Below are positions 7,097 to 61,930 of a stretch of DNA of 64,000 nt, one piece after another (the stretch's first letter is position 1; the number at the start of each line of letters is the position of its first letter). The stretch is from the sequence record MT366760.1. One strand, written 5' to 3'. A program made the translations under genes and the position numbers. The notes below the pieces were generated by a model. The model saw nothing but the letters and a program-made list of their open reading frames with translations, searched no databases and was not told the origin of the DNA.

Positions 7097-7149
7097 GCAA
7101 TCTTGTAAAGTAATTTCGATTATTCACCACTTATGCAAAAGGTAACGAT

Positions 7150-41642: not shown

Positions 41643-41676
41643 CTTCCATTATACCATAATCTCCCGTATGGCACAA
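41643..41676 (-). promoter_or_regulatory. Host sigma70-type early promoter
   Basis: TTGTGC-N17-TATAAT followed by GGAAGT. Confidence 0.7.
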
Positions 41677-43240: not shown

Positions 43241-43309
43241 ACTAAATCCCTCAATTGGGTTGTTGGCTTTAATTAATATAAGGCACTCCGAAGAATGCCC
43301 TAGGGTTAA

Positions 43310-43456
43310 TTATTTGCGTTTGAGTTTACGTCGCGCTATTCGATTACCCTCGAATGTTGCTGACCGCCTGAGCTGTAAGTACCGACAATTTGGTACAGGT
43401 TTGGTAAGTGGGTTTTTAGATCCTTGCCTTTTGTTCCGACCTCGGTGTTTTGACAT
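43310..43456 (-). CDS. Small basic protein
   Basis: MSKHRGRNKRQ...RRKLKRK; RBS AGGA; TGTAAATT upstream. Confidence 0.45.
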   Translation of the reverse strand: MSKHRGRNKRQGSKNPLTKPVPNCRYLQLRRSATFEGNRIARRKLKRK

Positions 43457-43510
43457 ACAACTTAGTCCTCTTGCAAAAGTGGCGGATTGCCACATTACCA
43501 ATTTACAGGA

Positions 43511-44310: not shown

Positions 44311-44345
44311 ACTTCCATTATACCAGAATACGGTATGGAAATCAA
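44311..44345 (-). promoter_or_regulatory. Host sigma70-type early promoter
   Basis: TTGATT-N17-TATAAT-GGAAGT. Confidence 0.75.
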
Positions 44346-45838: not shown

Positions 45839-46032
45839 TTTCTCTTAAAGTTACGTTCGAACCAACCACCATTAAGGTTGATTAAAATACCGGATTGTTC
45901 CTCAGCAACTGTATAGTTACCAGAATTGAAATTATAGTCAACGATTTCCATCGTTACGTCTTCGGCAAGTCCGATTGACGAACTGCCGAAGTTAAGAACC
46001 ATTTCATCGTGACTCTTAGTAGTCACAGCCAT
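45835..46032 (-). CDS. Hypothetical protein
   Basis: 65-aa coupled ORF. Confidence 0.55.
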   Translation of the reverse strand: MAVTTKSHDEMVLNFGSSSIGLAEDVTMEIVDYNFNSGNYTVAEEQSGILINLNGGWFERNFKRK

Positions 46033-46853: not shown

Positions 46854-46874
46854 TTGGATGTCTCCTTGTTGGTT

Positions 46875-46917
46875 AGTAATAATCGAGGACACTCATCAAA
46901 TGCCCTCTGTTATTACT
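46875..46917 (-). repeat. Conserved intergenic hairpin A (RNase III-like site)
   Basis: AGTAATAA-CA-GAGGGCAT-loop-GTGTCCTC-GA-TTATTACT. Confidence 0.7.
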
Positions 46918-47482
46918 ACTTAATCAGATGCTCATCATGTGGTGAATAATCATAGTCACCTGATGGTAGTTCAAGTACACGATAGCCCTTACCCCACCAC
47001 TTCTCACGGGTGTTATATTCACCTTTGTTGAAAGCATATAGGCAATGCAACATGTTCCATTCCTTTTCCAAGTGTGAACCATACTGACCATACACACGAA
47101 CATCACCACCCTTTGGCGTGATACTCAATAGGCGAGCTGTCCACTGAGGTTCACCAAAACACGTATGATATAAGAAACCCTGACCTTTAATCCACCTAGT
47201 CATATTAGGACATTGGAAGAGTGGACGCAAGAAGTTGCGAATATCCTTGATAGAGTGGAAGTCCCTAACCTCAACAGGTGTGATGAATAACTCCATTGAC
47301 GTCGGGTCTTCTTCACGGTCGTTGATGCTAGTCATTTGCTCACCAACCTGAGTAGTGAACTCAAACTGACGATTCCACAGACGCCAATTCAAAGTGTCGC
47401 CTTCAATAGATGATAAGTAAACAGGATGCACACCGTTGTGCTCGGTTGATAGCGCGATATATACTTTACCTTGTTTGAACAT
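46916..47482 (-). CDS. Hypothetical protein
   Basis: 188-aa ORF with strong RBS AAGGAGG. Confidence 0.75.
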   Translation of the reverse strand: MFKQGKVYIALSTEHNGVHPVYLSSIEGDTLNWRLWNRQFEFTTQVGEQMTSINDREEDPTSMELFITPVEVRDFHSIKDIRNFLRPLFQCPNMTRWIKGQGFLYHTCFGEPQWTARLLSITPKGGDVRVYGQYGSHLEKEWNMLHCLYAFNKGEYNTREKWWGKGYRVLELPSGDYDYSPHDEHLIK

Positions 47483-47504
47483 TTGTTCTTCCTCCTTGGG
47501 TTAA

Positions 47505-47543
47505 TAATAATCGGGTGCCCTATTCAAAGACACCCCGTTATTA
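47505..47543 (-). repeat. Conserved intergenic hairpin B
   Basis: TAATAA-CG-GGGTGTC-loop-GGCACCC-GA-TTATTA. Confidence 0.65.
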
Positions 47544-47807
47544 CTACTCCGATACTTCAAGTTTAAGGAAAGTACCCTGAAGGTGTTCGACGTTGCGGTT
47601 GCTCATACCAATGACGCCCCAATAACCCTCGAAGTCAATACCACCATGACTAGTTGGTTTACGCCATAGAACACTAATCAGGGTAACGCAACCGTCCGTG
47701 TGACGCCACAAGTACTGACCTTCAGCTTGTGGGCGCTCTGCTGTAAACAGCTTTGATGGGATAGTTACTACAGGATTAATACCAGATTCAACTTTAAATT
47801 CGGACAT
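47544..47807 (-). CDS. Hypothetical protein
   Basis: Start refined to ATG 47807 (RBS AAGGA). Confidence 0.65.
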   Translation of the reverse strand: MSEFKVESGINPVVTIPSKLFTAERPQAEGQYLWRHTDGCVTLISVLWRKPTSHGGIDFEGYWGVIGMSNRNVEHLQGTFLKLEVSE

Positions 47808-47832
47808 ACTTAGTTCCTTATTACTTAGGTTA

Positions 47833-47877
47833 TTAACATAATCAAGGACACTCACCGAATGCCCTTTGTTATATTAA
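47833..47877 (-). repeat. Conserved intergenic hairpin C
   Basis: TTAATATAA-CA-AAGGGCAT-loop-GTGTCCTT-GA-TTATGTTAA. Confidence 0.7.
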
Positions 47878-48134
47878 TACCAATTATCCGTTTCTTCAAA
47901 GAACCCCTCAGTGTCATCCACTAGGGAACCCGTCATACCGAACAACGCGACCACTGCAAAGAACCCCGCGACCATGAAAGCGAACAACGGGTAGTTCTTG
48001 TACTCGGTGTCCTGAATGTGCCACACATCTAAATAGTGCAGACCAACCACAACGCCAACCGCTAGTATAATCAGGGATGCTACTACGATAGCAACTACAC
48101 TGAACATCCTTACGTACTTAGTTGAAGTTTTCAT
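47874..48134 (-). CDS. Small membrane protein (2 TM)
   Basis: Two hydrophobic helices; start refined to MKTSTK. Confidence 0.6.
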   Translation of the reverse strand: MKTSTKYVRMFSVVAIVVASLIILAVGVVVGLHYLDVWHIQDTEYKNYPLFAFMVAGFFAVVALFGMTGSLVDDTEGFFEETDNWY

Positions 48135-48135
48135 C

Positions 48136-48426
48136 CTACTCACCTGCGACCTCATTCCATTCATCGCGTAGACTGGAAAGACTTTTGAAAGAACCAGTGA
48201 CATCACCTGAAACTTCGTAGTGGTCACCCATTGCACGAACAAGCATATGCTTGCAATCCTCGGTAACTAGTTCACCCTTATCAATCACGTTGTAGTGAAC
48301 TTTCGTACCCTCAGCCACTTCAGTAACTGAGTAGCTAGCATCAAGATGTACACCGCGCCACACCCTAGCTCGGGATTTACCACCCGTAAATTCAGCCTTG
48401 ATGTTCATAGTAAGTTGAGTAGTCAT
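48136..48426 (-). CDS. Hypothetical protein
   Basis: Start refined to MTTQL (RBS GAGGA), just after an early promoter. Confidence 0.65.
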   Translation of the reverse strand: MTTQLTMNIKAEFTGGKSRARVWRGVHLDASYSVTEVAEGTKVHYNVIDKGELVTEDCKHMLVRAMGDHYEVSGDVTGSFKSLSSLRDEWNEVAGE

Positions 48427-48460
48427 GATCTTTGTCCTCGTTAAATTACTCAATTTCCGT

Positions 48461-48495
48461 ACTTCCATTATACCAGAATATGGTTTCCATTGCAA
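48461..48495 (-). promoter_or_regulatory. Host sigma70-type early promoter
   Basis: TTGCAA-N17-TATAAT-GGAAGT. Confidence 0.75.
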
Positions 48496-48504
48496 ATTTA
48501 TTTA

Positions 48505-48777
48505 CTAGTCCTTCACCGCTTTATCAATAGCTGTGTGGAGCTTAACACGTAGGTCATTACTGTCATATGCATAGCTAGCGTTCTCGGCTAGTTTGCCAAT
48601 GATATTGACAAAGTCATCAACACCCATATTGAGAGCAATATCAATAACTTCCTTGTCACCCTTTGCTGCGAGGTGTGTCTTGTCTTCAATTTCCACACAT
48701 AGGTCTAGCTTGCATGATGATTCACACGTGAACAGTTTTGCTTCATCGCTCTTAATGACTTCTAATTCAGTACTCAT
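48505..48777 (-). CDS. Hypothetical protein
   Basis: Start refined to MSTEL. Confidence 0.6.
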   Translation of the reverse strand: MSTELEVIKSDEAKLFTCESSCKLDLCVEIEDKTHLAAKGDKEVIDIALNMGVDDFVNIIGKLAENASYAYDSNDLRVKLHTAIDKAVKD

Positions 48778-49094
48778 TATCTTCTTCTCCACTTGTTCTG
48801 ACAATATTGACGACCGTCTTTCTTTAACCATAGGTGCTGTTGTCTAGCCCGTACACGTGCACCCTTGCCGTTATCACCGCGAGCTTTTCTACCACTGAAC
48901 TTGTTTTGGGTGAAGTAATCCTCTTCAGGAATATCACCGAACTGTGCATAATAGTCTTCTCTAATTTCTATCTCTTGTGCTATTGCAGCCATGATGCCTT
49001 GAGCAAGTAGGGTTCGTGTGATTCGTCTAGGTCGCATACACGAACTACAGCCGCAGGTCGGTGAACAATTAGATTGAAATACGCTATACATCAT
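48777..49094 (-). CDS. Hypothetical protein
   Basis: ORF with a basic C-terminus; start uncertain. Confidence 0.5.
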   Translation of the reverse strand: MMYSVFQSNCSPTCGCSSCMRPRRITRTLLAQGIMAAIAQEIEIREDYYAQFGDIPEEDYFTQNKFSGRKARGDNGKGARVRARQQHLWLKKDGRQYCQNKWRRR

Positions 49095-49308
49095 CCCCCT
49101 CCGATGGGTTGAACATCAACCAGAACATATAAGTCAAACATACGACGAACCCTACACCACTATTGATAATCATCGTCCACATGATATAACCGTCTAGATC
49201 ACCATAGTCAACACCATAAACTTTGTAGGCTAGATAAAGACCTATGAATACCGACATTAGCCCGATTTCAAACTTGATGAATCTCCACATCCACTTTAAT
49301 ACGTCCAT
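49084..49308 (-). CDS. Small membrane protein
   Basis: Two hydrophobic helices; RBS AGGGG. Confidence 0.6.
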   Translation of the reverse strand: MDVLKWMWRFIKFEIGLMSVFIGLYLAYKVYGVDYGDLDGYIMWTMIINSGVGFVVCLTYMFWLMFNPSEGDDV

Positions 49309-49311
49309 AGT

Positions 49312-51315
49312 CTACCCCTTAATCATACGAAAGTGATAACGTTCTGCATCACCTTTGTGTTCAATGTAGTTACCATCGCTCTGCATTTCCCACAGACCTT
49401 TGGATGACACCAGTTGTTTCTCTAAATCACTTATGATTGTTGCACGATGCTCCGGATTTAGAATAGGGAAGCATACCTCAACACGGTTGTATAAATTGCG
49501 CTCCATCCAATCAGCCGATGAGCAATATACTTCTTGAGTCTCACCGTCAGAGAAGTAATAGACTCGCGCATGTTCAAGGAAGCGACCAACCACAGACACG
49601 ACACGAATGTTTTCCGACATCCCCTTTACTTGTGGCACTAGGCAACAAATGCCGCGAACAATGATAGTGATCTTAACTCCCGCCTTGCTCGCTTTGTACA
49701 ACTCATCAATCATCTTCTTATCACACAACGAGTTCATCTTAAGTGTAGCACAGACGTTTGAGTTGTCCTTAGCTTTCTTAGCGAGTTGTCGTAGTTTACT
49801 TACAAAGGCGTCCGCAATGTTATTTGGACTAGTAATAAGCTTCTTCAAGTTTGGCTTACCTAGACCCGTGATAGTATTGAATACTTCGCTGACCTCATGT
49901 GTCAATTCAGGGTTGGTAGTCAATACACCATAGTCGTCGTAGACCTTAGTGGTTAATGAGTGGTAGTTACCCGTACCGAGGTGGGCATAATGCTTGATAC
50001 TCCCGTTCTCATCACGGCTAACTAGACTCATCTTAGCGTGTGTCTTCTTACCGATAACACCGAACACTACTAACGCACCTGCTTTTCTCAAGCGTGCTGC
50101 TAATTCAAGATTGGTACGTTCATCGAACCGCGCTTGAATCTCAATGACTGCCGTAACTTGCTTACCGTTCTCAGCCGCTTGTACAAGTGCATCCGCGATT
50201 TCGCTGCCCTCACCTACTCGGTAAACTGTTTGTTTAATAGATCTAACTCGTGGACACTCTGCTGCTTGACGCAAAAAGTCAACGACAGGTTTAAATGAAT
50301 CGTAGGGGTGGTGAAGTAACACGTCACCCTCATCAATCACATCGAACATCCCACCATTAGAGCCATATGACATCTCACGACGTTCGTGTTGTGGGAACAA
50401 TAGTTCGTCTGGTGCATCGTCGATAAGTGGTTTAAAGCGTGAGAAATCAATAATCTTCTGACGTGAGATACACTCAACCGTCGTCATACCGAATGAATCT
50501 ATTAGGCGGTTAACCAATTTCTTAGGCATAGACTCGGATACTTCCAAACGAACAGGTGCACCAAATGGGCGCTTCTTCAATTCACCACGCAGCTCCTGTT
50601 CAAGTAATGCCATTGATTTAGCATTGACTTTCATATTAGCAGAACGTGTAATTCGATATTGATGCCAACCTTTGACTTTCAAACCTGGGAATAGGGAAGC
50701 AGCGTGTTCCTTAATTAGTGATGACAGCGTTATATATGTTGCGGAGTCACCCTCAATACGTACCAAACTAGGTAGGTTATTTGGTAAGTGCATTGATACT
50801 AGTCTGGTTTCACGTCCCAAACTATCGTCACCTTTAAGCTCAATCAGGAAGTGGAGTGAACCGCTAACCATCGACGGGAAGGGGTGGGATACGTCAAGTG
50901 ATACAGGACTGAGTAATGGACGTACTTGATTATTAAAGTAGTCTTCAGTGAACTTGCGTTGCTTCTTACCACGTTCACGGTGGGTCAGGACACTGATGTC
51001 ATGTTTATTAAGTTCTTTCATCAGCATCTGAAAGATAACGTGTTGCTGTGATACTAAGTCATCGTTATCCTGATATGTTTCTAGTAGGGTCTGCATCGGT
51101 ACACGACCGTCAATGCTGCGAGGCGTCTGACATTTGTTAGCCTTCTCCACTAACTTACTAGCACGCACCTCAAAGAACTCATCTAAGTTCGAAGCCGAAA
51201 TGAGCAGATAACGGAAACGCTCCATGAGGGGTAGCGTTGTATCCATCGCTGTATTTAGAACACGACGTGTAAATGCAAGAGTTGAAGTCTCGCGGTTGAT
51301 ATATGTAGTTTTCAT
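49312..51315 (-). CDS. ppk1: Polyphosphate kinase 1
   Basis: NRE..LAF..RVL, SNLDEFFEVR, HPFP, HHPYDSF, KQTVYR, ARFDE, KTHAK (autophosphorylated His), HLGTGNY, KMNSL, IVRGICCL, GRFLEH and SADWMERN...RVE motifs. Confidence 0.97.
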   Translation of the reverse strand: MKTTYINRETSTLAFTRRVLNTAMDTTLPLMERFRYLLISASNLDEFFEVRASKLVEKANKCQTPRSIDGRVPMQTLLETYQDNDDLVSQQHVIFQMLMKELNKHDISVLTHRERGKKQRKFTEDYFNNQVRPLLSPVSLDVSHPFPSMVSGSLHFLIELKGDDSLGRETRLVSMHLPNNLPSLVRIEGDSATYITLSSLIKEHAASLFPGLKVKGWHQYRITRSANMKVNAKSMALLEQELRGELKKRPFGAPVRLEVSESMPKKLVNRLIDSFGMTTVECISRQKIIDFSRFKPLIDDAPDELLFPQHERREMSYGSNGGMFDVIDEGDVLLHHPYDSFKPVVDFLRQAAECPRVRSIKQTVYRVGEGSEIADALVQAAENGKQVTAVIEIQARFDERTNLELAARLRKAGALVVFGVIGKKTHAKMSLVSRDENGSIKHYAHLGTGNYHSLTTKVYDDYGVLTTNPELTHEVSEVFNTITGLGKPNLKKLITSPNNIADAFVSKLRQLAKKAKDNSNVCATLKMNSLCDKKMIDELYKASKAGVKITIIVRGICCLVPQVKGMSENIRVVSVVGRFLEHARVYYFSDGETQEVYCSSADWMERNLYNRVEVCFPILNPEHRATIISDLEKQLVSSKGLWEMQSDGNYIEHKGDAERYHFRMIKG

Positions 51316-51344
51316 TGTTGTTCCTCATGTGTGACGACACACTA

Positions 51345-51352
51345 TATTTACA
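51345..51352 (-). promoter_or_regulatory. TGTAAATA phage promoter motif upstream of ppk1
   Basis: Reverse-strand TGTAAATA 30 nt upstream of the ATG, followed by a GTGTG-TCGT-CACAC hairpin and RBS GAGGA. Confidence 0.6.
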
Positions 51353-51399
51353 TAACTATATGCGGTGGCTCCCTTCTAGAACCACCTGATATGGCTACG

Positions 51400-51606
51400 C
51401 TACGCTTCCTCGAAAGACAAGTCAGGTATTTCTTTTGTCGTTTCATCCGATTCATATTCAGCACGCAACTTCGCTACCCTTGCCGCTGTTTCATTCCCAT
51501 CAACCCACGCATTGAATTCTGCCATTCCCATTGGGCGTAGATCTTTCGCTTCAAATCCATTCATAATCTTAATCCTGTTTTCACTGGTATTAGCAAGCAC
51601 ATCCAT
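51400..51606 (-). CDS. Hypothetical protein
   Basis: Short ORF with RBS GAGGA. Confidence 0.5.
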   Translation of the reverse strand: MDVLANTSENRIKIMNGFEAKDLRPMGMAEFNAWVDGNETAARVAKLRAEYESDETTKEIPDLSFEEA

Positions 51607-51679
51607 TATAACATAGTCCTCATGTGATTGCAAATATTGTAAATAGCCACGTAACCATTGACCAAACTAGGAGATACAA

Positions 51680-52204
51680 ATGGCACGGTCTATTATTCAG
51701 AGTGTTAAAATCACTAACCAAGCACCCTCGGATTACGCACAATACTTGACTAAAAAACTTGGGACTAAGCTCAGTCGTAAAGTTAAGTTCCTGAATGGCG
51801 TACCAACTATTGACGAGGTTGTGACAAGTAAGTACGACCTCATTGTATGTTTGTTCCCTGATAAACCCGAGTCACAAGCGGACGCTGATAAGATTCACGA
51901 AATCATGTCGGTGCTAGGTCGTGACCCTTGGAACATCCCACATACAGCGGTGAAGTGTATGACCCTAAACAACTGCTGTAAACCAGTTAAGGTGCCAGAT
52001 TCTGAAGGGAACGTCGATGAAGCCTTATATGATTACAACACAGGTGACTTCGACTTTGAGAAAGCTATCACAACGGTTAAACCCAATATAATCGCTCACC
52101 TTGAAGCTGTTCATCTGGAGTCCTTCCTACCTAAGACCAAAGTTGTTACACCACAGGTAGGTTACGCAATTCACCAAGCACTTCACGGAGGCTCAAATGA
52201 GTAA
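51680..52204 (+). CDS. Hypothetical protein
   Basis: 174-aa ORF with RBS AGGAG; TGTAAATA at 51638. Confidence 0.75.
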   Translation: MARSIIQSVKITNQAPSDYAQYLTKKLGTKLSRKVKFLNGVPTIDEVVTSKYDLIVCLFPDKPESQADADKIHEIMSVLGRDPWNIPHTAVKCMTLNNCCKPVKVPDSEGNVDEALYDYNTGDFDFEKAITTVKPNIIAHLEAVHLESFLPKTKVVTPQVGYAIHQALHGGSNE

Positions 52205-52526
52205 GGGTAACGACTTCATTAATTCGCGTGCTGATCTTGAAAAGCGTGTTGGCTCACTCCTATGTGCTTACCTATCAGTACATCAACCATCAGACATTAT
52301 GCCGTGGTGTGAGAAGTTCAAAGCGCACATCATGGACAAAATCAAAGGTTCTGAAGTTGAATTCGTTAAGATGAAATTCGAACCAGATGGTGGTCAACTA
52401 CATTGCCATATTGAAGTTCAGATGGATTGTGGTTCTGTAGAAATGCACCACCGTTACACATTCACCCAACAACTCGGAGATGCTGAAAATGGCGAAGAAG
52501 AAGAAGGACAAAGCGAAGAAAGCTGA
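52197..52526 (+). CDS. Hypothetical protein
   Basis: 109-aa coupled ORF. Confidence 0.65.
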   Translation: MSKGNDFINSRADLEKRVGSLLCAYLSVHQPSDIMPWCEKFKAHIMDKIKGSEVEFVKMKFEPDGGQLHCHIEVQMDCGSVEMHHRYTFTQQLGDAENGEEEEGQSEES

Positions 52527-53157
52527 TAAAAAGTCCAAGTCCAAGAAAGGGAAATGGCTCAAAGCTGATGACCCCTTGAAGCGCTTCAAAGTCAGTAAGT
52601 ATTGCAACGAGAAATATGACCCCGTGTTGTTCAACCTACGCGAAAATCCGTGGGGATTGTTCTCTAACTTTGCACCAACACCCTTCATCGCCCCACCACT
52701 ATGGGGTGGAGATCCACGCTTGTGGTTCAACAACGAGCAATGGTTCATGGCTCACAAGATGGATGTGGATAATGGCGGTTCTGCAACTGCTGACCTACTC
52801 AACAAGATTCTGTGGGCATACCATCCTGACAAGTGTCGTTACTTCGCTAGCCAGAAGGCGGGTGGGTTGATGCGCGAAAACTGGGACAAAGATAACCAAC
52901 TCCGTCACACTGTGATGCTTGTAGGTCTACGTCATAAATACCAACAGAACCCACTAGCTGCACAAGCACTCATTGAGAGTGGTGAGCGCTTATTAGTAGA
53001 GAACGTTAGCTTTGACGACTACTGGGGTAATGGTAAAGACGGTAACGGTAGTAATAACCTAGGTAAACTCCATATGATAGTTCGTGAAGAACTTCGTTCC
53101 GGTGAATTGCCTATCCTGAATAACACACAACTAGCCGACTTGGTAGGAGGACACTAA
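52489..53157 (+). CDS. NADAR/YbiA family protein with Lys-rich N-terminal tag
   Basis: FSNF, EQWFMAHK, W....VM..GLRHKY.QN and LVEN..FDDYWG.G.DGNGSNNLGKL.M.VREEL motifs. Confidence 0.88.
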   Translation: MAKKKKDKAKKADKKSKSKKGKWLKADDPLKRFKVSKYCNEKYDPVLFNLRENPWGLFSNFAPTPFIAPPLWGGDPRLWFNNEQWFMAHKMDVDNGGSATADLLNKILWAYHPDKCRYFASQKAGGLMRENWDKDNQLRHTVMLVGLRHKYQQNPLAAQALIESGERLLVENVSFDDYWGNGKDGNGSNNLGKLHMIVREELRSGELPILNNTQLADLVGGH

Positions 53158-53438
53158 TGTTCCAATTAAAACTCCTGTGGAAAGCTATCACTACTTTTCA
53201 GACACTGAAGAAAGCCCGTAGCTTATTCCATGCAGCACCAACTCTTTATGACCCACAATTCCTTGATGAGTACGACTGTCAGCACAAGGTTATTCGTGGT
53301 GGTAAAGAACTGTGGGTTCCCGCTCGACCGTACGGATTGCAGGGTGCCTATCTCAAAACCCGTTTGACCCTAGCGTGGGGTGTCCTTACCGGACGCTATG
53401 ACGCACTAGACTGGAAGGACGGGGATAGCCATGGCTAG
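53157..53438 (+). CDS. Hypothetical protein
   Basis: 93-aa coupled ORF. Confidence 0.65.
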   Translation: MFQLKLLWKAITTFQTLKKARSLFHAAPTLYDPQFLDEYDCQHKVIRGGKELWVPARPYGLQGAYLKTRLTLAWGVLTGRYDALDWKDGDSHG

Positions 53439-54141
53439 AGAAGTAGAACGCAAGTGGTTAGTATCACGGAAGTCCACTCAGAAGTATCTGAACGTTATGC
53501 TATCACCACAGACTATCGGTGACTCACACTTCTACCCACAAGTAACACGCACCTTTATCAAGCAACACTATTTGGTAGATGCTAACGCTATGGTGTCCTT
53601 TAACACCCATGAGTTAGTGTGGGATGTCCTGATTAAGAACGGATGTGACCATCCTGTTACTTTCCGTATACCAATCAAACCATCTGATATTACCCAAGCT
53701 CTAGAGATATTTGGTAACCGTCAGGTGACTTCATTGGAACTGGACAAGGTTGATATTAGCATCCGTGCTACACCACACAATTCTAATCTTGAATTCCGTG
53801 TTAAAATCGACCATCCTAAAGGTGGGCGCTACGAATTCGAGAAATCAATGTCTAATAACGTTGCGAGTGGTGTACTAGATTTCGTGTGGCGTGACTTCAT
53901 GCACAATAACCCGTACAAGGTAGAAAAGACACGTTATGAGTTCCTTTTACTTAATGGTCTGAAACATTCTATTGATATGTTTGGTGACAATGACGACACC
54001 TACTATGAGATAGAAGAAACATCTGGTTCGTCTTCAGTTAACGACATCAATCTACCCGTGGATATTGAAGTCATCGAAGAACTAACTGGTTCCTATGGTA
54101 ACAAGGAACGTGCTATTGCTTATGGTAAAGCACATAGTTAA
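53431..54141 (+). CDS. CYTH-domain (triphosphate tunnel metalloenzyme) protein
   Basis: N-terminal EVERKWLV (ExExK), IKQHYL, RYEFE, VEKTRY and IDMF...YEIE motifs. Confidence 0.75.
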   Translation: MAREVERKWLVSRKSTQKYLNVMLSPQTIGDSHFYPQVTRTFIKQHYLVDANAMVSFNTHELVWDVLIKNGCDHPVTFRIPIKPSDITQALEIFGNRQVTSLELDKVDISIRATPHNSNLEFRVKIDHPKGGRYEFEKSMSNNVASGVLDFVWRDFMHNNPYKVEKTRYEFLLLNGLKHSIDMFGDNDDTYYEIEETSGSSSVNDINLPVDIEVIEELTGSYGNKERAIAYGKAHS

Positions 54142-54148
54142 TTAAATT

Positions 54149-54186
54149 GCCCTGACTTCGGTTGGGGCTTTTTCATCTTGTAAATA
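54149..54186 (+). repeat. Terminator-promoter cassette, copy 2
   Basis: 37/38 identical to 32935-32972. Confidence 0.85.
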
Positions 54187-54231
54187 AACAGTGATGATAC
54201 TATTATCTTTTAATTAACTAGGAGAAACACA

Positions 54232-55422
54232 ATGCGATTACTTAACTTACGCGACAAGGTAGTCATCTACCATGCAGGGTGCTTAGACGGTATGGGTGCA
54301 GCAGCTACCTTTCAGCACTGGCTGCTAAAACGTTTGGAGATTCAATCAGGTTGCGACAAGACTTTTGTCCATCACGTTACACACGCTCAACTCGATGAGA
54401 GAACTGCTGCTCACGTTATTCAATATGGTGTGAAACATTCTGAGCGTGCTAGCCTGAGCCAGTCCCAATTCACATTGGATGTTGCATATGTACCTGCTGT
54501 CTACGGTAAGGACTATTCTGACTTAAATCAGATGGGTGCTAACGAAATTGAAGACTCCCTGCACGTTGCTTACCATGAGAAGGACGTATACATCGTTGAC
54601 TTCTCATTGCCTATCGAACAGCTTGTTAAGATTGCTGCGGTCGCTAACTCCGTAACTGTTCTTGACCACCATCATACTGCATTTGAAATGTACAAGGACT
54701 GGTCACCCGAAGAGATGCCATACAACGTTAACATCGAACTAGAATACGCTCGTTCTGGTGCAACACAAACGTGGTGGTATCTAATGGGTAACGAAGATTA
54801 CCCAATGCCTATCCGTCACGTAGAAGACCGCGACTTATGGAAGTGGCAGGTTGACGGTACAAAAGAATTCACACTTGCCATCTACAACGGTGATGACTCG
54901 TTTATGAAGAGTGTCGTCGGTTGGCAACGTCTGTTATCTTTCCAACCCGCGACGTGTGAAGCTAACTATAACGCTCTAATCGATAAGGGTCGCATCTTCA
55001 AAGAGTACCAAGACGTTTCGATTAAGAAGCATATGAAGTATGTACGCTTCGTCAAACTAGCAGGCGGTATGTACAACGTCCCTGTAGTTAACGTCACTCG
55101 TGACATCACCAGTGAGATTCTTGAACAGATTATCATTGAACATAAAGCACCATTCGCAATTGCATTCATAGATGGTCCTGATGAACGTTGGTGGTCGTTG
55201 CGTTCTAAGTTCCTACCTGATGGTAACCCAGACTTCCCTAATGCGGTTGACGTTAGTGAGATTGGTAAAATCATGGGTGGTGGTGGTCACCAAGCAGCAA
55301 GCGGTTTCTCAACGCCACACTACGTAGCACCAGAAGAACTAGACCGATGGGCTAACACTGTACTCATGCAGCAACAGCAGAAAGCCGAAGAACACTCACA
55401 ATGTCAATGTGGAGATCACTAA
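54232..55422 (+). CDS. DHH/DHHA1 phosphoesterase
   Basis: YHAGCLDG, IVDFS, LDHH, VEDRDLW, SLRS and GGGGHQAASGF motifs. Confidence 0.9.
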   Translation: MRLLNLRDKVVIYHAGCLDGMGAAATFQHWLLKRLEIQSGCDKTFVHHVTHAQLDERTAAHVIQYGVKHSERASLSQSQFTLDVAYVPAVYGKDYSDLNQMGANEIEDSLHVAYHEKDVYIVDFSLPIEQLVKIAAVANSVTVLDHHHTAFEMYKDWSPEEMPYNVNIELEYARSGATQTWWYLMGNEDYPMPIRHVEDRDLWKWQVDGTKEFTLAIYNGDDSFMKSVVGWQRLLSFQPATCEANYNALIDKGRIFKEYQDVSIKKHMKYVRFVKLAGGMYNVPVVNVTRDITSEILEQIIIEHKAPFAIAFIDGPDERWWSLRSKFLPDGNPDFPNAVDVSEIGKIMGGGGHQAASGFSTPHYVAPEELDRWANTVLMQQQQKAEEHSQCQCGDH

Positions 55423-55423
55423 A

Positions 55424-55762
55424 ATGACTACTCAAAAATCAGAACTAGACCAATCAAGATCAGTTGCAGCAACTCGCCTAGAAGAGAACATCCGTAAACA
55501 CATTGCTACTGACCTTGACGCTGTTAGCCTACTTGAAGTCGTAGCAGACGCGTATATGATGCGCCTTAATATGCAGACCAAACAAGAGCTAGCTGTTCAG
55601 GCACATGCTGCATATATGCACGAATGTAAGAAGCGCGGCATCACTTTCCCTGATGGTGAACTTGTAAATAAATACGTAATTGAGTTCATGGAGCACTACC
55701 ACGATGCAGAGTGGTTAAAACATAGTATCCATGCTCACGTTGAAGGCGCTACTGGAGAGTAA
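55424..55762 (+). CDS. Hypothetical protein
   Basis: Helical ORF with RBS GGAG. Confidence 0.65.
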   Translation: MTTQKSELDQSRSVAATRLEENIRKHIATDLDAVSLLEVVADAYMMRLNMQTKQELAVQAHAAYMHECKKRGITFPDGELVNKYVIEFMEHYHDAEWLKHSIHAHVEGATGE

Positions 55763-55763
55763 C

Positions 55764-56744
55764 ATGAAAGCACTTATCGGAATAGCTTCTCACAACCCGT
55801 TTCAGATCACACATATGTTAGACGGGTTGATTGAGGACGCTGTTGAGTTCGAGAAAAAGGCTAAGAAAGGCAAAGTAAAAGAAGCCAAGGGTTGCCTAAC
55901 ATATCAATGTATGGGTTTCGGTGACGTTGTGGACGAAGATGTAAAAGTCGTTATGTGTCCAACGGTCGCTGTATTCCTTCGCAACCGTGAAGACTTCGAG
56001 AAGGCTCCGGTTATTGCACTGGTCTTTGATGACCCCGTCAAATTGGAGCACATTGGTTGTTTCCTCGCTGATGTGAACAACAAACCACATTCGTACGAAT
56101 ACGACTTTAAACGTCTAACAGCGAGCCAGATGCTAACGATTCTGACACGTGCTTCAGCGGGTAAATACCCAACAGAAGTCAACGATGAATCGCTCAACTT
56201 ACTTCCTCGTATGTTGGATGAAGTTGAAGGCTCCATCACTCAGCACTTACTGACGTTCCTTTCGTTTGTGCCTAACACTGATGACCGTACTACCCTGACT
56301 AAGCTCATTGTAGCATGGCTCATGAAGAAGGGTGCTGCTCCAAATGAACTACGTAAGTCTCTGGAAAAGGCGGGTGCTAAATCCAATGCACTGAATGCCT
56401 TTATGGACTATCTGAAGGATGCAGTCAAAGTCAAAGAAGCTTGTGAATACGTTGCTCAAAGAAAAGCTGAAGGCAAATCGGTCAACTATAAGAAGCTTGA
56501 GAAGGACACTGGTGTTGCAGCATTTGACATTAAGTACCTGATTAAGACAGCAAGGTTCAACGATTCTATCCAACATCCGAATATGAACACGAATGAGATT
56601 CACCGTGCTCGTAAAGAAAAGCAGAAGCTTGAAATGGATGCGATGGAAGAAGCTGCTGAATCCGCAGAGAAGGAAGAAGGCTTCTCAGTTGACAACGTTG
56701 ATGACGCACGCAAGACGGGTATGGACAACGAAGACTCTAAATAA
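55764..56744 (+). CDS. Hypothetical protein
   Basis: About 326 aa; RBS GGAG; TGTAAATA at 55663. Confidence 0.75.
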   Translation: MKALIGIASHNPFQITHMLDGLIEDAVEFEKKAKKGKVKEAKGCLTYQCMGFGDVVDEDVKVVMCPTVAVFLRNREDFEKAPVIALVFDDPVKLEHIGCFLADVNNKPHSYEYDFKRLTASQMLTILTRASAGKYPTEVNDESLNLLPRMLDEVEGSITQHLLTFLSFVPNTDDRTTLTKLIVAWLMKKGAAPNELRKSLEKAGAKSNALNAFMDYLKDAVKVKEACEYVAQRKAEGKSVNYKKLEKDTGVAAFDIKYLIKTARFNDSIQHPNMNTNEIHRARKEKQKLEMDAMEEAAESAEKEEGFSVDNVDDARKTGMDNEDSK

Positions 56745-56779
56745 ACTAGGAGGGGTGGTTACGGTCACCCACTTATCTT

Positions 56780-57253
56780 ATGGTTAATAATGCAAAAATG
56801 ACCCGACGGGGCTTCCTCGGTGTGTTGACTGCTGCTGCGGTATCAACAACGCTACCTTCAATCAGTGCTGAAGTTCACTCAGGTATACGCAAAGTCTACA
56901 CACCTCGTGCACCTAAGCCTTTTGAAATGCACATGGTTATAGTGGATAGCACTAAGATGTGGGAACATAACCCCGCTACAATCCACGAGATGGAACCCTA
57001 TGCGTTCCTCGCTGAATTATCTAAACTAGACCAGAGCGGTAGTATCGACTACTATGGTATAATGACACCTGATAAAGTGGTAGGTGTTAAAACGTGGGAC
57101 ATCAAAGGTTCAGATATCTGTGGTGTATATGAGTCTAAGGTACTTCTATCATATCGCATTGACCCAACTACGGGTAACATCAAGATACACAGACCTGTCG
57201 TTATTACGTGTGAACGTAATGTAACCGTCAACTATGAGGTTAAACAAGCATGA
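56780..57253 (+). CDS. Protein with twin-arginine (Tat)-type signal peptide
   Basis: N-terminus KMTRRGFLGVLTAAAVSTTLPSISA matches (S/T)RRxFLK followed by an h-region and a terminal Ala. Confidence 0.65.
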   Translation: MVNNAKMTRRGFLGVLTAAAVSTTLPSISAEVHSGIRKVYTPRAPKPFEMHMVIVDSTKMWEHNPATIHEMEPYAFLAELSKLDQSGSIDYYGIMTPDKVVGVKTWDIKGSDICGVYESKVLLSYRIDPTTGNIKIHRPVVITCERNVTVNYEVKQA

Positions 57254-57642
57254 TGAATGATGCAGAATTAAAGAAACGTGGTTTGGTAAATGTGGGTGAC
57301 AGAAATGTAGACTATCGCAAGTTAGGTTTGTCTAACCCACACAATAGCCTTGCAGCTTTGACAAATGATAAGGGCGAGTTCGTCTTCATAGATGGTGAGA
57401 AACAATGGGAATGTACCCATTGTAAACTAAAAGGTAGCTATGACGTATTCTGTGCTGATAACCCACAATTCATTGAATGCACTCATACCTACGACCGTTG
57501 TGAAGTGTGTGGTTGTACCCCACTATGTGCACCAGACTGTCAGGGTGTCGCTGATGCTCTAGCTTCGGTTGGTGTCTATATCGCGGGTTGTGAAAACTTG
57601 GAAGAAACTCCTCATGTTAAAGAACCTGATTTCTTCCATTAA
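57250..57642 (+). CDS. Cys-rich Zn-finger-like protein
   Basis: CTHC, CEVCGC and C..DC motifs. Confidence 0.6.
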   Translation: MMNDAELKKRGLVNVGDRNVDYRKLGLSNPHNSLAALTNDKGEFVFIDGEKQWECTHCKLKGSYDVFCADNPQFIECTHTYDRCEVCGCTPLCAPDCQGVADALASVGVYIAGCENLEETPHVKEPDFFH

Positions 57643-57758
57643 CCGATTGCTACCCCCTGCACAAGCGCTACAACTTATCACTGTCTAATACAGTTAAGAA
57701 TAAAACAGTTGAGCGCAGAGGGTGACTGGGATAATACAAGTTATGGAGATTACGATTA

Positions 57759-58253
57759 ATGGCATATGACAACGATACAGAAATTGCTGTGACGTCACTC
57801 TTTAAGGGTGACCCATGGCCTGTGGGTAAATGGGTGAAACACACTGATGAAGACGGTGAGGTTGAATCCGTTGAAATTATAGGTTACGACTCACACAAAC
57901 AAATTGTCACCTTGCGTGATGAGAACGGTTGTGTGTTCACCAAAGACCCATTCGATAACTATTGGGTTCATTGTAAACCCATTGATACACCTAGCAAGCC
58001 TCATCAGATTGTTGCTGAAGCATATCTCAAACGATTCAATATCATATTTGCTGATGAAGTGGAAGACCCTGACGACCCTACAGCCGTCCATCATCTAGCG
58101 TGGATGTTACGTCAGATTGTTGATGATTCTTTGTCATCAGATACTAAAGCTAACCGTTGGTTGGGATTCGTTCAAGGTACCCTAGTACTTATGGGACATT
58201 TGGACGTTGAAGAGGAACGGGAAAATACGAGGGGAATATTCAATGGCGCTTAA
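57759..58253 (+). CDS. Hypothetical protein
   Basis: 164 aa; C-terminal KANRWLGFVQG segment. Confidence 0.7.
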   Translation: MAYDNDTEIAVTSLFKGDPWPVGKWVKHTDEDGEVESVEIIGYDSHKQIVTLRDENGCVFTKDPFDNYWVHCKPIDTPSKPHQIVAEAYLKRFNIIFADEVEDPDDPTAVHHLAWMLRQIVDDSLSSDTKANRWLGFVQGTLVLMGHLDVEEERENTRGIFNGA

Positions 58254-58524
58254 AAAATTCACACCTGAACTACTAGAAGCCACACAAGGTCATCGTGGTA
58301 TTGTACTTGGTAAATACATTGACCCTGAGGGAATCAAGGAAACCAAGTCTATTACCGTTGTGGAATTTGTCGAACACAAAAACCCAGATACCCGTGAATG
58401 GCAGAAGTCAGTAGTCTACATTTGTCAAGGTAAAAGGTATAGTCGGACTATCGAAGACTTCTGTAATTGTATGTGGTATGTGTGCAATCATTCTATCCAA
58501 CCTGCAGGACGCGGATTACGTTGA
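58243..58524 (+). CDS. Hypothetical protein
   Basis: Start refined to MALKKF. Confidence 0.6.
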   Translation: MALKKFTPELLEATQGHRGIVLGKYIDPEGIKETKSITVVEFVEHKNPDTREWQKSVVYICQGKRYSRTIEDFCNCMWYVCNHSIQPAGRGLR

Positions 58525-58530
58525 TATCCC

Positions 58531-58560
58531 ACTGACAAACAATTGACATAACGCTGACAA
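58531..58560. promoter_or_regulatory. Triple TGACA (minus-strand TGTCA) at 11-bp period, Pho-box-like
   Basis: TGACA at 58533, 58544 and 58555. Confidence 0.4.
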
Positions 58561-58637
58561 AGCTTATTCAATGGACTGTGAGGTGCCCTCTAATTAGAAT
58601 AGTAACCACCGTTACAATACTTAATTAAATCTTTGAG

Positions 58638-58892
58638 GTGAGCATTATGAAAAAGGGTAATACGATTCGTATTAGAAAAGTGGAAGGTTGTTTGGACGAC
58701 GTAGTCCTACTCGATAGAAAAATCGGGGTTGAGTTTTGCGAATTTCAGGTAAGCGAACTCTGCGACAACTTTTTCAGTTTTCTGTCTAATGCTAACTTTA
58801 CGTCTCTCCGCGTTTCAAAGCAAAGTAGTGACGGTGGTTACTTACCTGAGTTTAATCCAACGGGTATGACGTTGCGAGAGATTCTCAGCTAG
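58638..58892 (+). CDS. Hypothetical protein
   Basis: 84-aa ORF with RBS GAGG. Confidence 0.5.
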   Translation: MSIMKKGNTIRIRKVEGCLDDVVLLDRKIGVEFCEFQVSELCDNFFSFLSNANFTSLRVSKQSSDGGYLPEFNPTGMTLREILS

Positions 58893-58916
58893 TTTTCATG
58901 TCAAAGTTCCTTAAGT

Positions 58917-58952
58917 AGAAACCCAAATTCCTTATGGTTTTTGGGTTTTTTT
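58917..58952 (+). terminator. Intrinsic terminator
   Basis: AGAAACCCAAA...TTTGGGTTTTTT. Confidence 0.7.
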
Positions 58953-59004
58953 ACCTCTAAATAAACTAATTATAAGTGCCCGAAAATAATAAGGAGAGGC
59001 ACAA

Positions 59005-59691
59005 ATGAAATACGTCTATTTCATCTCAGTTGTTCTATTCACCTTACTGAGAAAAGTTGTTGGTCTAGTGGCATTTTGGTTTGCACTCCCATTCAGGGGT
59101 TACGCACGAAATGTCGTGTACAACTATCGACTCAACCACGGCAAATACCTGAAGCGCTTGTGGGAACGTCCTATCCGACTATCCGAAGATATGTCAGTGT
59201 TTATCATTGACCCCTATCACGGGACAGAAGGTGGATTTATACGATGTCGGGATGTATCGCATATTGAGTACTTTTTAGTCTATTGGTTTATCTGGGGTTG
59301 GCTAGATGACGATACGAACTATGACACCATGTGTCTTGGCTTTACAGAGAAGGTCTTGACGGGTGAACACCCTAAAGGTTGGTTTACTAAGCTGTTTAGA
59401 AAACAACTGGAAGGTGCAGTGGTCACGATGACCAATAGCTTGTATGGTAATAGCTTTGATCTGGGCGACAGGCGTGCGTGTGAGCCGCTTTTCAGCTTCC
59501 CCGCTTCACTGCTATGGTTAATGCGTAATACGGCTTACAACTTCAAATACTCGCAATATGAGACACTTGATGAGTCCCGTGTTTTCTACTTCGAAATCTT
59601 CAATCGCGCATTTGGTTGGAAACCCGAAGGAATCATCTGTGGTAGACAAAACTATACATTAGTGTTCTTCGAAACTATTCCTGAAAAATAG
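59005..59691 (+). CDS. Hypothetical membrane-anchored protein
   Basis: N-terminal hydrophobic helix; RBS AGGAGAGG. Confidence 0.7.
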   Translation: MKYVYFISVVLFTLLRKVVGLVAFWFALPFRGYARNVVYNYRLNHGKYLKRLWERPIRLSEDMSVFIIDPYHGTEGGFIRCRDVSHIEYFLVYWFIWGWLDDDTNYDTMCLGFTEKVLTGEHPKGWFTKLFRKQLEGAVVTMTNSLYGNSFDLGDRRACEPLFSFPASLLWLMRNTAYNFKYSQYETLDESRVFYFEIFNRAFGWKPEGIICGRQNYTLVFFETIPEK

Positions 59692-59700
59692 TTTGAAGAC

Positions 59701-59736
59701 TAAAAAACCCCGAACCGAAAGGAACGGGGTTTTATT
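59701..59736. terminator. Bidirectional terminator
   Basis: AAAAAACCCCG..CC-GAAA-GG..CGGGGTTTTATT. Confidence 0.75.
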
Positions 59737-59740
59737 ATCT

Positions 59741-59866
59741 CTAGAATAATAGTATCTTTCTATAGAACAACATGCCTAAGAATGATACGAGTGCAATGGG
59801 TGGATTGGTCAGAGCTATATGCGTTAGTGCCGCTGTACAACCCACAACAATCAGAGTATTCTTCAT
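59741..59866 (-). CDS. 41-aa hydrophobic peptide (not in ORF track)
   Basis: MKNTLIVVGCTAALTHIALTNPPIALVSFLGMLFYRKILLF*; RBS GGAG 5 nt upstream of the ATG. Confidence 0.5.
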   Translation of the reverse strand: MKNTLIVVGCTAALTHIALTNPPIALVSFLGMLFYRKILLF

Positions 59867-59889
59867 AACGACTCCGGTGTATGAGGGAT

Positions 59890-59918
59890 AAAAAGCCACC
59901 CTTTCGAGTGGCTTTGGT
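59890..59918 (-). terminator. Intrinsic terminator
   Basis: AAAGCCAC-(TCGAAAGG)-GTGGCTTTT downstream of the acidic-protein gene. Confidence 0.65.
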
Positions 59919-59938
59919 TTAAGTAGTAACTACTCTAC

Positions 59939-61186
59939 TTAAAGGAACGCCTTGAATGCTTTAGTAGCACGCTTGTTAATCGCTTCATCTTCGATAGCGT
60001 TAACAGCTTTTTCAACTAGCTCTGTCACTTCATCTTCGTCACAGTAGCTACATAGTTCAGCCATCATTGTTAGATCTTTAACACGTGGTGACGTCAAGTC
60101 GATTTCGCTTAGCTCTTTTTCAAGCTTAGTCTTCGCACCTTTCTTACCCTTGATTGGTGCTAGTTCAACGATTTCAGTGTAAAGGTCTTCAAGTGGTGCT
60201 TCGGACTCTTCTTCTTCCGCTTCATCACCGTCTTCCGACTCTTCTTCCGCTTCCGCGTCACTGAACTCCGCTAGGTACTCATCTTCTTCGTACACTTCGT
60301 AGTCGCCATCGTCGCCAACTTCAAGATCCGCTTTCTTAGCGAACTTCTTAAGTGCTGCTTTCAATGAGTTTTCGTACTCTTCCGCATCAATGTAAACGTG
60401 TGAGTAAGTTTCTTCATCGTCCGCACCATTGTGACCGACTACGTTAGGGATATCAGCTTCAGCAAAGCCGTTCTTATCTAGTACCTTGCTCAGCGCTTTA
60501 ACAGCTTCTTCAGCGTCGTCTTCATCTTCGAACACTACGTAAACGAAACCACCGTCTTCTTCCTGCTCAGCTTCAGCTTCAGCTTCGTCGTCGTTTTCAG
60601 CTAGCCAAGCATCTAGTTCTTCTTCGTCCATTTTCTTAGCTTTTTTCTTCTTCAAGCCAAGTTCAATAGCACGCTCGCGCTTCTCATCTTCAGTTAGCTC
60701 TTCTTGCTCAGCCTCAGCGTCGTCAGCTTCTTCTTCGCCTTCTTCCTGAGCATTTAGAGCTTCCCACACTGAATCTTCGCCTTCTTCAAGAATCAGTTTA
60801 ACGATAGCTTTGCGACCTTTGCGACCGTAGTCGATCTCTAGCGCATCCGCCAACGCTTTAACCGCGTCATCTTCAAGCTCCGCGATAGTGTCTTCAAGTG
60901 ACTCTTCTTCGCCTTCTTCCGACTCTTCTTCTTCAGCCGCAGCCTGCTTAGCAGCAATTGCGCTAGCTAGTGAAAGCATCCAGTATGGAGATTTGCCGCC
61001 AACTCGTGTAATAAGCGTTGGCTCCTTGATTTGCTCGGCAGCTTCATCAATAAGCGCCTTTTGCATGGTCAGTGAAACACTAGCACCTTCGAAAGCGAAC
61101 TTACCTTCTTCGTTAGTTTGAGCAACGATTGCAGTAGCTAGAGAAGTAAGTGCAGTTGAGAAAGTTTTCATAGTTTTCATAGTCAT
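59939..61186 (-). CDS. Highly acidic multidomain protein sharing the 15354 repeat module
   Basis: Contains EDEKRERAIELGLKKKKAKKMDEEELDAWLAEN, homologous to the 15354 repeats, and poly-E linkers. Confidence 0.85.
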   Translation of the reverse strand: MTMKTMKTFSTALTSLATAIVAQTNEEGKFAFEGASVSLTMQKALIDEAAEQIKEPTLITRVGGKSPYWMLSLASAIAAKQAAAEEEESEEGEEESLEDTIAELEDDAVKALADALEIDYGRKGRKAIVKLILEEGEDSVWEALNAQEEGEEEADDAEAEQEELTEDEKRERAIELGLKKKKAKKMDEEELDAWLAENDDEAEAEAEQEEDGGFVYVVFEDEDDAEEAVKALSKVLDKNGFAEADIPNVVGHNGADDEETYSHVYIDAEEYENSLKAALKKFAKKADLEVGDDGDYEVYEEDEYLAEFSDAEAEEESEDGDEAEEEESEAPLEDLYTEIVELAPIKGKKGAKTKLEKELSEIDLTSPRVKDLTMMAELCSYCDEDEVTELVEKAVNAIEDEAINKRATKAFKAFL

Positions 61187-61254
61187 GTTCCTTAGTAGTT
61201 ACAAATTCTCGGGCGGAATGCCCTGACTCTGTTGAGCCGTTTTTTCAAAGTTCA

Positions 61255-61288
61255 ATTCCATTATACAGGAATACAAGTGCGCTGTCAA
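61255..61288 (-). promoter_or_regulatory. Consensus sigma70 early promoter
   Basis: TTGACA-N17-TATAAT-GGAA. Confidence 0.85.
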
Positions 61289-61357
61289 CCACTTTTTGTC
61301 AAATACCTCGAAAAACCAGTCAAAACCCCGTTTTTCCACGTATTTTGTGGTGTTCCT

Positions 61358-61398
61358 CACATAATCGGGCACACTCCACGAATATGCCCTGTTATGTG
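61358..61398 (-). repeat. Conserved intergenic hairpin D
   Basis: CACATAA-CA-GGGCAT-loop-GTGCCC-GA-TTATGTG. Confidence 0.7.
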
Positions 61399-61863
61399 TT
61401 AATCCAGTGCGTATAGAGTCTCGTTTACTACTACAATAGCGCGAATCAGCGAATCAATGTCCATATCCTGTGGTAAAACCAGTTCCTGAGCACCGTTCGC
61501 CAACTGTATATGAGTCGTCTCAATATCCTGACGTTTGAAAGCCCCTCTAACGTAGGGTACGAAACTTCTGTACTTGGTGGGTAGCCACTGAACACCGTTG
61601 TCGTCCTCGATTACTCGTACAGACCATCGGATATCGTGTCCGTCCAACCAACCTAGCATATACAATGTACAGTAGCGTTTGTCCTCGAAGTAGTGCTCCA
61701 GACGCGGAAAACGCAGTGTAACGATGACCTTAGAATCATATTTCAGTGCCATTTCGCTATCTGTAATGACATGCGGGATGACTTTAGCCTGCTCATTCTC
61801 CACAGAACGCGTGAACAAGTCCATTAGAGTAGCTGAGATTACAGCTTTAACCGTATTCTTCAT
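61399..61863 (-). CDS. Hypothetical protein
   Basis: Start refined to MKNTV (RBS GAGG). Confidence 0.7.
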   Translation of the reverse strand: MKNTVKAVISATLMDLFTRSVENEQAKVIPHVITDSEMALKYDSKVIVTLRFPRLEHYFEDKRYCTLYMLGWLDGHDIRWSVRVIEDDNGVQWLPTKYRSFVPYVRGAFKRQDIETTHIQLANGAQELVLPQDMDIDSLIRAIVVVNETLYALD

Positions 61864-61895: not shown

Positions 61896-61930
61896 ACTTC
61901 CATTATACAGGAATCCATGACTACTGTCAA
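61896..61930 (-). promoter_or_regulatory. Consensus sigma70 early promoter
   Basis: TTGACA-N17-TATAAT-GGAAGT. Confidence 0.85.

Follow-up and report, generated by a model that had tools for sequence, protein, structure and literature searches.

Intergenic hairpins in the GR7B window

Vibrio phage vB_VcorM_GR7B (MT366760.1; hereafter GR7B) is a myovirus with a genome of 207,758 base pairs (bp), and its host is V. coralliilyticus RE98. The subject of this study is a family of RNA hairpins that lie between its early genes and carry a small CA/GA internal loop. The window, that is, the whole stretch of 64,000 nucleotides (nt) analysed here, begins at base 143,759 of the GR7B record (window base 1) and ends at the right end of the record; between positions 46000 and 49000 it is 100% identical to the record. 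Positions are those of the window unless they are called record positions. The genes near the hairpins are small, unannotated and encoded on the minus strand, and most early genes of GR7B are without known function.

An initial annotation, made from the letters of the window alone, had described four full hairpins on the minus strand and two partial copies. The four full hairpins and their architecture are confirmed by folding. Each is comprised of an AU-rich lower stem of 7-9 bp, a 2x2 internal loop with CA (once CG) on the 5' side and GA on the 3' side, an upper stem of 9-10 bp and a variable apical loop of 3-5 nt. Their folding energies lie between -21.7 and -23.5 kcal/mol and their z-scores between -5.7 and -6.7, and none of 200 shuffled sequences was equally stable. 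The hairpins and their divergent relatives in the window are as follows.

46874..46918, minus strand: canonical hairpin, type A upper stem GAGGGCAUUU / GAGUGUCCUC, between GR7B_00212 and GR7B_00211; its first 3 nt are the UAG stop codon of the upstream gene
47502..47546, minus strand: canonical hairpin, type B upper stem GGGUGUCUU / AGGGCACCC, CG/GA loop, between GR7B_00213 and GR7B_00212
47833..47877, minus strand: canonical hairpin, type A upper stem AAGGGCAUUC / GAGUGUCCUU, between GR7B_00214 and GR7B_00213
61356..61400, minus strand: canonical hairpin where GR7B_00237 ends, before the sigma-70 promoter of GR7B_00236
43268..43314, minus strand: divergent member, upper stem AGGGCAUUC / GAGUGCCU(U), UU/AG pairs kept
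51353..51397, minus strand: possible divergent member, between GR7B_00220 and the polyphosphate kinase gene

The upper stems fall into two subtypes, type A (GGGCA...GUGUC) and type B (GUGUC...GGGCA), in which the arm sequences appear to be swapped. Examples are 47502-47546 compared with 46874-46918, and the copies at record positions 30562, 34094 and 15369. A swap of this kind is possible only via G:U wobble at the RNA level.

Size and position of the hairpin family

The family is larger than first reported. With only the four window copies as input, a covariance model (R1) finds 10 more copies in GR7B, at record positions 5.9-37 kilobases (kb), with expectation values (E) of 2e-10 to 4e-5, which brings the total to 14 strong copies. 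The GR7B record is linear and its start is arbitrary, hence the window copies and those at 5.9-37 kb may belong to a single minus-strand block of small genes. A second model built from all 14 GR7B copies (R2) recovers eight strong copies in the sister phage GR11A (MT366761.1; RecA 88% identical), together with one truncated, weak match at E 0.13. In Pseudomonas phage Lauda and Erwinia phage Yoloswag, which are less closely related, R2 has no matches. Across the copies, the CA/GA loop and an AACA / GAUU core are nearly invariant, and the apical loops are 3-8 nt or longer and unconserved.

All copies in GR7B and GR11A are intergenic by the annotation and are on the coding strand. In 12 of the 14 GR7B copies the 5' arm contains or touches the stop codon of the preceding gene, and in 13 of the 14 the start codon of the next gene follows 13-26 nt past the hairpin. 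The exception is 61356-61400, after which a consensus sigma-70 promoter follows and not directly a ribosome-binding site. As the initial annotation had proposed, the hairpins are otherwise placed between a stop codon and the next Shine-Dalgarno sequence.

The two partial copies fared differently. The one proposed at 43272-43310 is real and divergent (43268..43314). Its internal loop (CCCU / UAUA) is larger and more similar to that of phage T7 processing sites, it folds at -16.2 kcal/mol (z -4.9), and R2 gives it only 21.5 bits (E 0.09). The other, 61205..61230 on the minus strand, was rejected. It shares only CAGGGCAUUC with the family and is without a matching 3' arm, it sits in the 5' leader of GR7B_00236, its z-score is -2.06 with 8 of 200 shuffles folding equally well, and it is detected neither by R1 and R2 nor by the T7-based model R3 introduced below. 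The hairpin at 51353..51397 had not been listed before. Its lower stem is CAUAU/AUAU and its internal loop CA/GC, and in its 9-bp upper stem the UU/AG pairs lie 2 bp nearer to the apical loop. R1 scores it at 25 bits (E 0.0019) and it folds in its intergenic context, but it is not among the R2 matches at E<=1. Possibly this is a family member that has decayed or changed its register.

Upstream of the divergent hairpin, 270 nt of the window (43241-43510) are without an annotated gene and might carry a small gene or a non-coding RNA.

Covariation, synteny and an RNA-level role

The hairpins are real, evolutionarily maintained RNA structures. In a set of 28 distinct copies, 94.7% of the alignment cells form standard pairs and 15 of the 19 pairs have changed on both sides. 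The covariation score is 0.589 as compared with 0.23 in shuffled alignments, none of 500 of which reaches the observed value, and it falls to at most 0.096 when the partner is slid by 1-3 columns. Although fitting the alignment to the model gives structure an advantage, the difference from the controls is large. The family has many G:U and U:G pairs; because these turn into C-A mismatches on the reverse strand, that strand scores about 40 bits lower. The element therefore functions at the RNA level, or at least through one particular strand.

Four copies of GR7B have a syntenic counterpart in GR11A, from which they differ by compensatory changes. Together with the double changes in 15 of the 19 base pairs, these four cases bear out the compensatory changes that the initial annotation had seen between copies. 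The pairs are listed below by record position.

GR7B 30562 and GR11A 181038: A:U to G:C
GR7B 18851 and GR11A 90826
GR7B 205114 (window 61356-61400) and GR11A 169369-169415: closing pair A:U to U:A, upper stem largely replaced
GR7B 191260 (window 47502-47546) and GR11A 155753-155799: type B in GR7B, type A in GR11A

Copies have also been gained and lost between the two phages, and near-identical copies lie far apart. Both features would suit hairpins that serve as recombination junctions and shuffle early-gene cassettes. This is one half of a reading, the other half being RNase III binding without cutting (see below), to which as a whole we assign a very low probability. The promoter-early stem-loop (PeSL) cassettes of T4-type phages, which Arbiol et al. 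are said to have described in 2010, are likewise repeated stem-loops flanking small early genes in a variable region; reportedly, each joins a terminator-like hairpin with an early promoter and has its role in DNA recombination. Most copies of the present family, unlike PeSLs, have no attached promoter, and only one precedes a promoter at all. The G:U pairs point to a role at the RNA level and, along with the strict sense orientation, oppose one that is purely at the level of DNA.

Promoters and terminators around the hairpins

A family of strong, near-identical promoters is found only in the hairpin-bearing minus-strand block. Its consensus, AAATAAATTTGCAATGGAAnCCATATTCTGGTATAATGGAAGT, is of the host sigma-70 type, with an extended -10 element that is followed by a conserved GGAAGT. 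Eight minus-strand copies are present, at record positions 7175, 8812, 19540, 185411, 188080, 192230, 205023 and 205665. These are probably early promoters, which drive the operons that carry the hairpins. Their presence supports both the label of an early region and the parallel with T7 class I transcription. The promoters and the terminator found in the window are the following.

61260..61288, minus strand: perfect consensus sigma-70 promoter TTGACA-17-TATAAT, drives GR7B_00236
61902-61930, 48467-48496, 44317-44345 and near 41653, minus strand: other promoters of the same family
59891-59915, minus strand: classical intrinsic terminator AAAGCCACUC GAAA GGGUGGCUUUUU with a UUUUU tail, after GR7B_00236

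Stable hairpins (-22 kcal/mol) placed right after stop codons could be passive elements of the mRNA that act without RNase III, such as pause hairpins, leaky terminators or elements that stabilise the 3' end. The 3' flank, GAUUAUUAUU, contains enough U's for a crude terminator scan to pick it up, and one copy closes a transcription unit before a promoter. However, the U-rich flank is base-paired. There is no free U-tract because the flanking U's pair in the covarying lower stem, where GAUUAU is matched by the 5' arm. The hairpins thus lack the hallmark of an intrinsic terminator, in agreement with the initial annotation, which had held that they are not terminators. True terminators in the window look different, as the one at 59891-59915 illustrates, and neither a stabiliser nor a terminator needs an invariant internal loop or U:G and U:A pairs in a fixed register. 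We consider a passive role highly unlikely.

Many early-gene starts in the genome share the context RGGA-N(2-4)-ACGATTATG (record positions 7128, 30542, 33165, 34493, 35578 and others), which echoes the CGAUUAU of the hairpin 3' arm. The idea that GATTATG at gene starts is an alternative pairing partner of the 5' arm was dropped, since it is not enriched genome-wide (38 occurrences found, 37 expected).

Comparison with the RNase III sites of phage T7

The sites used for comparison were R0.3, R0.5, R1, R1.1, R1.3, R4.7 and R18.5 of phage T7, at coordinates that we take to be those of Dunn and Studier from 1983. The regions around these classical RNase III sites were folded from the T7 genome (NC_001604). 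At these coordinates, T7 RNA is cut 3 nt after the upper stem at all seven sites examined. Among them, the proven site R1.1 reads ...ACUC AAGGUCAUUC GCAA GAGUGGCCUU UAU^GAUUG..., and the family reads ...AUAAC A AAGGGCAUUC GAU GAGUGUCCUU GAUUAU.... Nine of the ten upper-stem pairs are the same and the tenth is a flipped wobble; in the hairpin at 47833..47877, 18 of 20 stem bases are the same as in R1.1. The UA/UG pairs of the distal box stand in the same register in R1.1 and the family. R0.3 and R0.5 share the AUAAC...GAU(U)AU flanks. More generally, the sites of T7 and T3 and the family are alike in being intercistronic in early transcripts made by the host polymerase, and in having two stems of about 10 bp around an internal loop, with a variable apical loop.

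There are also clear differences. The internal loop of T7 sites is asymmetric, with about 4 over 5 nt (ACUC / UAUGA), whereas that of the family is a symmetric 2x2 loop (CA/GA); only 43268-43314 has a larger one, and the T7-type asymmetric loop is thus not a feature of the family. In the family, unlike in T7, all of the lower stem is paired and the stop codon of the upstream gene falls within it. GR7B itself is a 208-kb myovirus of Vibrio that is unrelated to T7. A second point of comparison is the Bacillus phage SP82, for which Panganiban and Whiteley are said to have described RNase III sites in early mRNAs in 1983. SP82 resembles GR7B in being a large myovirus with several conserved intergenic hairpin processing sites in its early polycistronic RNAs, and differs from it in having a Gram-positive host whose enzyme has a different specificity.

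When a covariance model is trained on the seven T7 RNase III sites only (R3), its top three matches in the window are all family members, namely the divergent hairpin 43268..43314 (43271-43311; 20.1 bits, E 7.6e-4), 47833..47877 (47835-47870; 18.7 bits, E 0.0025) and 46874..46918 (46875-46917; 16.2 bits, E 0.021). In the first 50 kb of the genome, all matches at E<=0.021 are likewise family sites, at 5958 and 18853 (both strands) and at 35597, with E from 4.5e-4 to about 0.02. The R3 scores are modest (16-20 bits), and only type A copies and the divergent copy are found. Because the loop is a symmetric 2x2, the R3 scores are modest and R2 has no match in T7, we would class the family on sequence as a variant of the T7 kind and not as a member of the T7 sequence family.

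Fit to the recognition rules of RNase III

The rules used here were reported for minimal E. coli RNase III substrates, namely uR1.1 and R1.1[WC] (Pertzev and Nicholson, 2006; PMC1540722). In these substrates the distal box is best as UA/UG, with a stringent demand for the U:G pair, and at least 11 bp are required between the cut and the apical loop, the sequence of which is irrelevant. A G:C pair at position 2 of the proximal box blocks binding and lowers reactivity about 15-fold in the minimal E. coli substrate, and a strong pair beside the scissile bond blocks catalysis while a weak one favours cleavage (PMC1540722).

The family agrees with most of these rules. Pair 8 of the upper stem is U:G in 27 of 28 copies and pair 9 is U:A in 27 of 27, in the register of U15:G24 and U16:A23 of uR1.1, so that a canonical UA/UG distal box lies 9-10 bp from the predicted cleavage site. 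The 10-bp upper stem and the adjacent A-G position give the 11 positions from predicted cut to loop that are also seen in uR1.1. A two-turn helix calls for at least 20 bp with stacking allowed, and 9 bp, the 2x2 loop and 10 bp add up to 21 stacked positions. Beside the predicted cut, at the equivalent of proximal-box position 4, every copy has an A-G mismatch; this is favourable and matches the weak pair at the scissile bond of uR1.1. Position 2 is where the two differ, as a G:C pair is an antideterminant in uR1.1 and yet is present in about a third of the family copies.

This G:C pair, known to weaken binding or to uncouple cleavage from it, is what would speak for the other half of the reading mentioned above, in which RNase III binds the hairpins for a regulatory or protective purpose without cutting them. 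The pair at the predicted scissile bond is nevertheless the weak A-G mismatch and not an uncoupling G:C.

Several points weigh against taking the hairpins as RNase III processing signals. Cleavage is predicted by computation, and the sequencing runs that contain this phage are of DNA only and are probably from source samples. The T7 coordinates were tested only by their agreement with the folds and with the length of 28 nt that is given for the product in PMC1540722. R3 misses the type B copies and R2 finds no matches in the T7 genome, therefore the similarity to T7 is partial. The equivalent of position 2 is G:C in 10 of 28 copies (it is A:U in 17 distinct copies); some copies may therefore not be good substrates, or the enzyme of Vibrio may follow other rules. 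Finally, the strict conservation of AAC-A...GA-UU is tighter than the known RNase III rules require, and could reflect another ligand or recent spread by duplication.

Distribution beyond GR7B and GR11A

The full CA/GA motif was found by pattern search and BLAST in three uncultured viral genomes, one of which is a complete 49.7-kb genome with three copies. It is also found in the T7-like Vibrio phage 1.204.O, directly upstream of the large terminase gene. The type A CA/GA pattern has one match in metagenomes, on one contig. The N4-like Vibrio phage PJN101 has the same upper stem with a 1x1 C/A loop, and Erwinia jumbo phages of the Alexandravirus type have the same type of upper stem, extended to 11 bp, with a GU/GA loop. 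In contrast, the type A CA/GA pattern has no matches in 185,579 bacterial and archaeal genomes, and the type B pattern has none in viral contigs. A pattern of the upper stem only gives 12 matches in bacterial genomes from scattered taxa, which is roughly at the estimated chance level (about 3) and so uninformative. A search of viral contigs for relatives with a 415-amino-acid early protein as query found none, the query being of low complexity. Rfam has no matches in the window at the gathering threshold and only chance-level ones at E<=1 around the hairpins. A description of the motif was not found in the literature on GR7B, on RNase III in Vibrio phages and on processing sites in phage transcriptomes.

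Two side observations come from these genomes. Contigs of Alexandravirus-like jumbo phages, one of them at positions 1480-1560, carry repeated GU/GA hairpins with the 11-bp upper stem GAAGGGCAUUC / GAGUGUCCUUU, which are probably a sister variant of the CA/GA family. In the 49.7-kb uncultured viral genome, about 120 nt of non-coding sequence (contig positions 2683-2801) are 79% identical to unannotated regions of Aeromonas phages LAh1-LAh5 and may be another conserved RNA element.

The distribution bears on who reads the hairpins. The initial annotation had offered two readers, RNase III acting as in T7 or a phage RNA-binding protein. In the second case the hairpin would be a binding or cleavage site for a phage protein, such as a translational regulator or a hairpin-specific endonuclease (Cas6-like or RegB-like). 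Most GR7B early genes could in principle supply it, being without known function, and the RNase III rules do not call for the degree of conservation seen in the AACA / GAUU core and the CA/GA loop. But the upper stem, and sometimes the whole motif, occurs in T7-like, N4-like and Erwinia jumbo phages and in unrelated uncultured viruses, for which a common protein is unlikely and none is obvious, and the conserved UU/AG pairs fit a known determinant of the host enzyme. An upper stem common to unrelated gammaproteobacterial phages therefore argues for a conserved host factor rather than a phage protein, and we regard the phage-protein reading as quite improbable. A phage-encoded RNase III (PF14622) was not found in GR7B.

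Proposed processing of the early messages

Taken with the comparison to T7 sequences, the R3 matches and the published recognition rules, which lend computational support to the first of the two readings, the hairpins are likely to be processing signals for host RNase III, built around a 2x2 CA/GA loop and placed in polycistronic early mRNAs. The RNase III dimer would dock on the upper stem via the distal and proximal boxes and cut at the CA/GA loop, 3 nt beyond the upper stem on the 3' strand (GAU^UAU). On the 5' strand, a second cut may fall between C and A. Catalysis would be helped by the weak non-Watson-Crick pairs at the cut site, which may also confine cutting to a single strand. By register with T7 R1.1, the cuts predicted in the four full hairpins of the window are as follows.

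46874..46918: between 46909 and 46908 (5' strand, C^A) and between 46882 and 46881 (3' strand, GAU^UAU)
47502..47546: between 47537 and 47536 and between 47510 and 47509
47833..47877: between 47868 and 47867 and between 47841 and 47840
61356..61400: between 61391 and 61390 and between 61364 and 61363

In either case, with one strand cut or both, the stop codon before the hairpin and the ribosome-binding site after it would survive. If only the 3' strand is cut, the hairpin would stay on the upstream message as a protective 3' end, with the stop codon intact, and the downstream gene would gain a short leader of about 20-35 nt. In this way, long phage messages would be cut into single-gene pieces.

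A further possibility, which we judge to be rather unlikely, is that CA/GA hairpins make up an undescribed class of their own among phage intercistronic RNA elements, and one that is widespread. Their nearly identical R1.1-like stem in unrelated phages may then have arisen by convergence on an optimal docking module for gammaproteobacterial RNase III, or by horizontal spread of such a module, and the symmetric loop may alter the outcome of processing. If so, the 2x2 loop may lead to excision of the whole hairpin by double-strand cutting, the G:C-rich copies may bind without being cut, and expression may be tuned gene by gene.

Processing of early messages by RNase III is textbook knowledge for T7, and to our knowledge it is essentially unmapped in large and jumbo phages. 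If the hairpins are host RNase III signals, they offer a searchable signature, namely a lower stem, a CA/GA loop and a 10-bp stem of the AAGGGCAUUC / GAGUGUCCUU type with its UA/UG pairs. With such a recognisable signal, mature mRNA ends and the processing of operons could be predicted during annotation for many marine phages. Additionally, the more than 28 natural variants are a ready mutational series for the study of RNase III rules outside E. coli.

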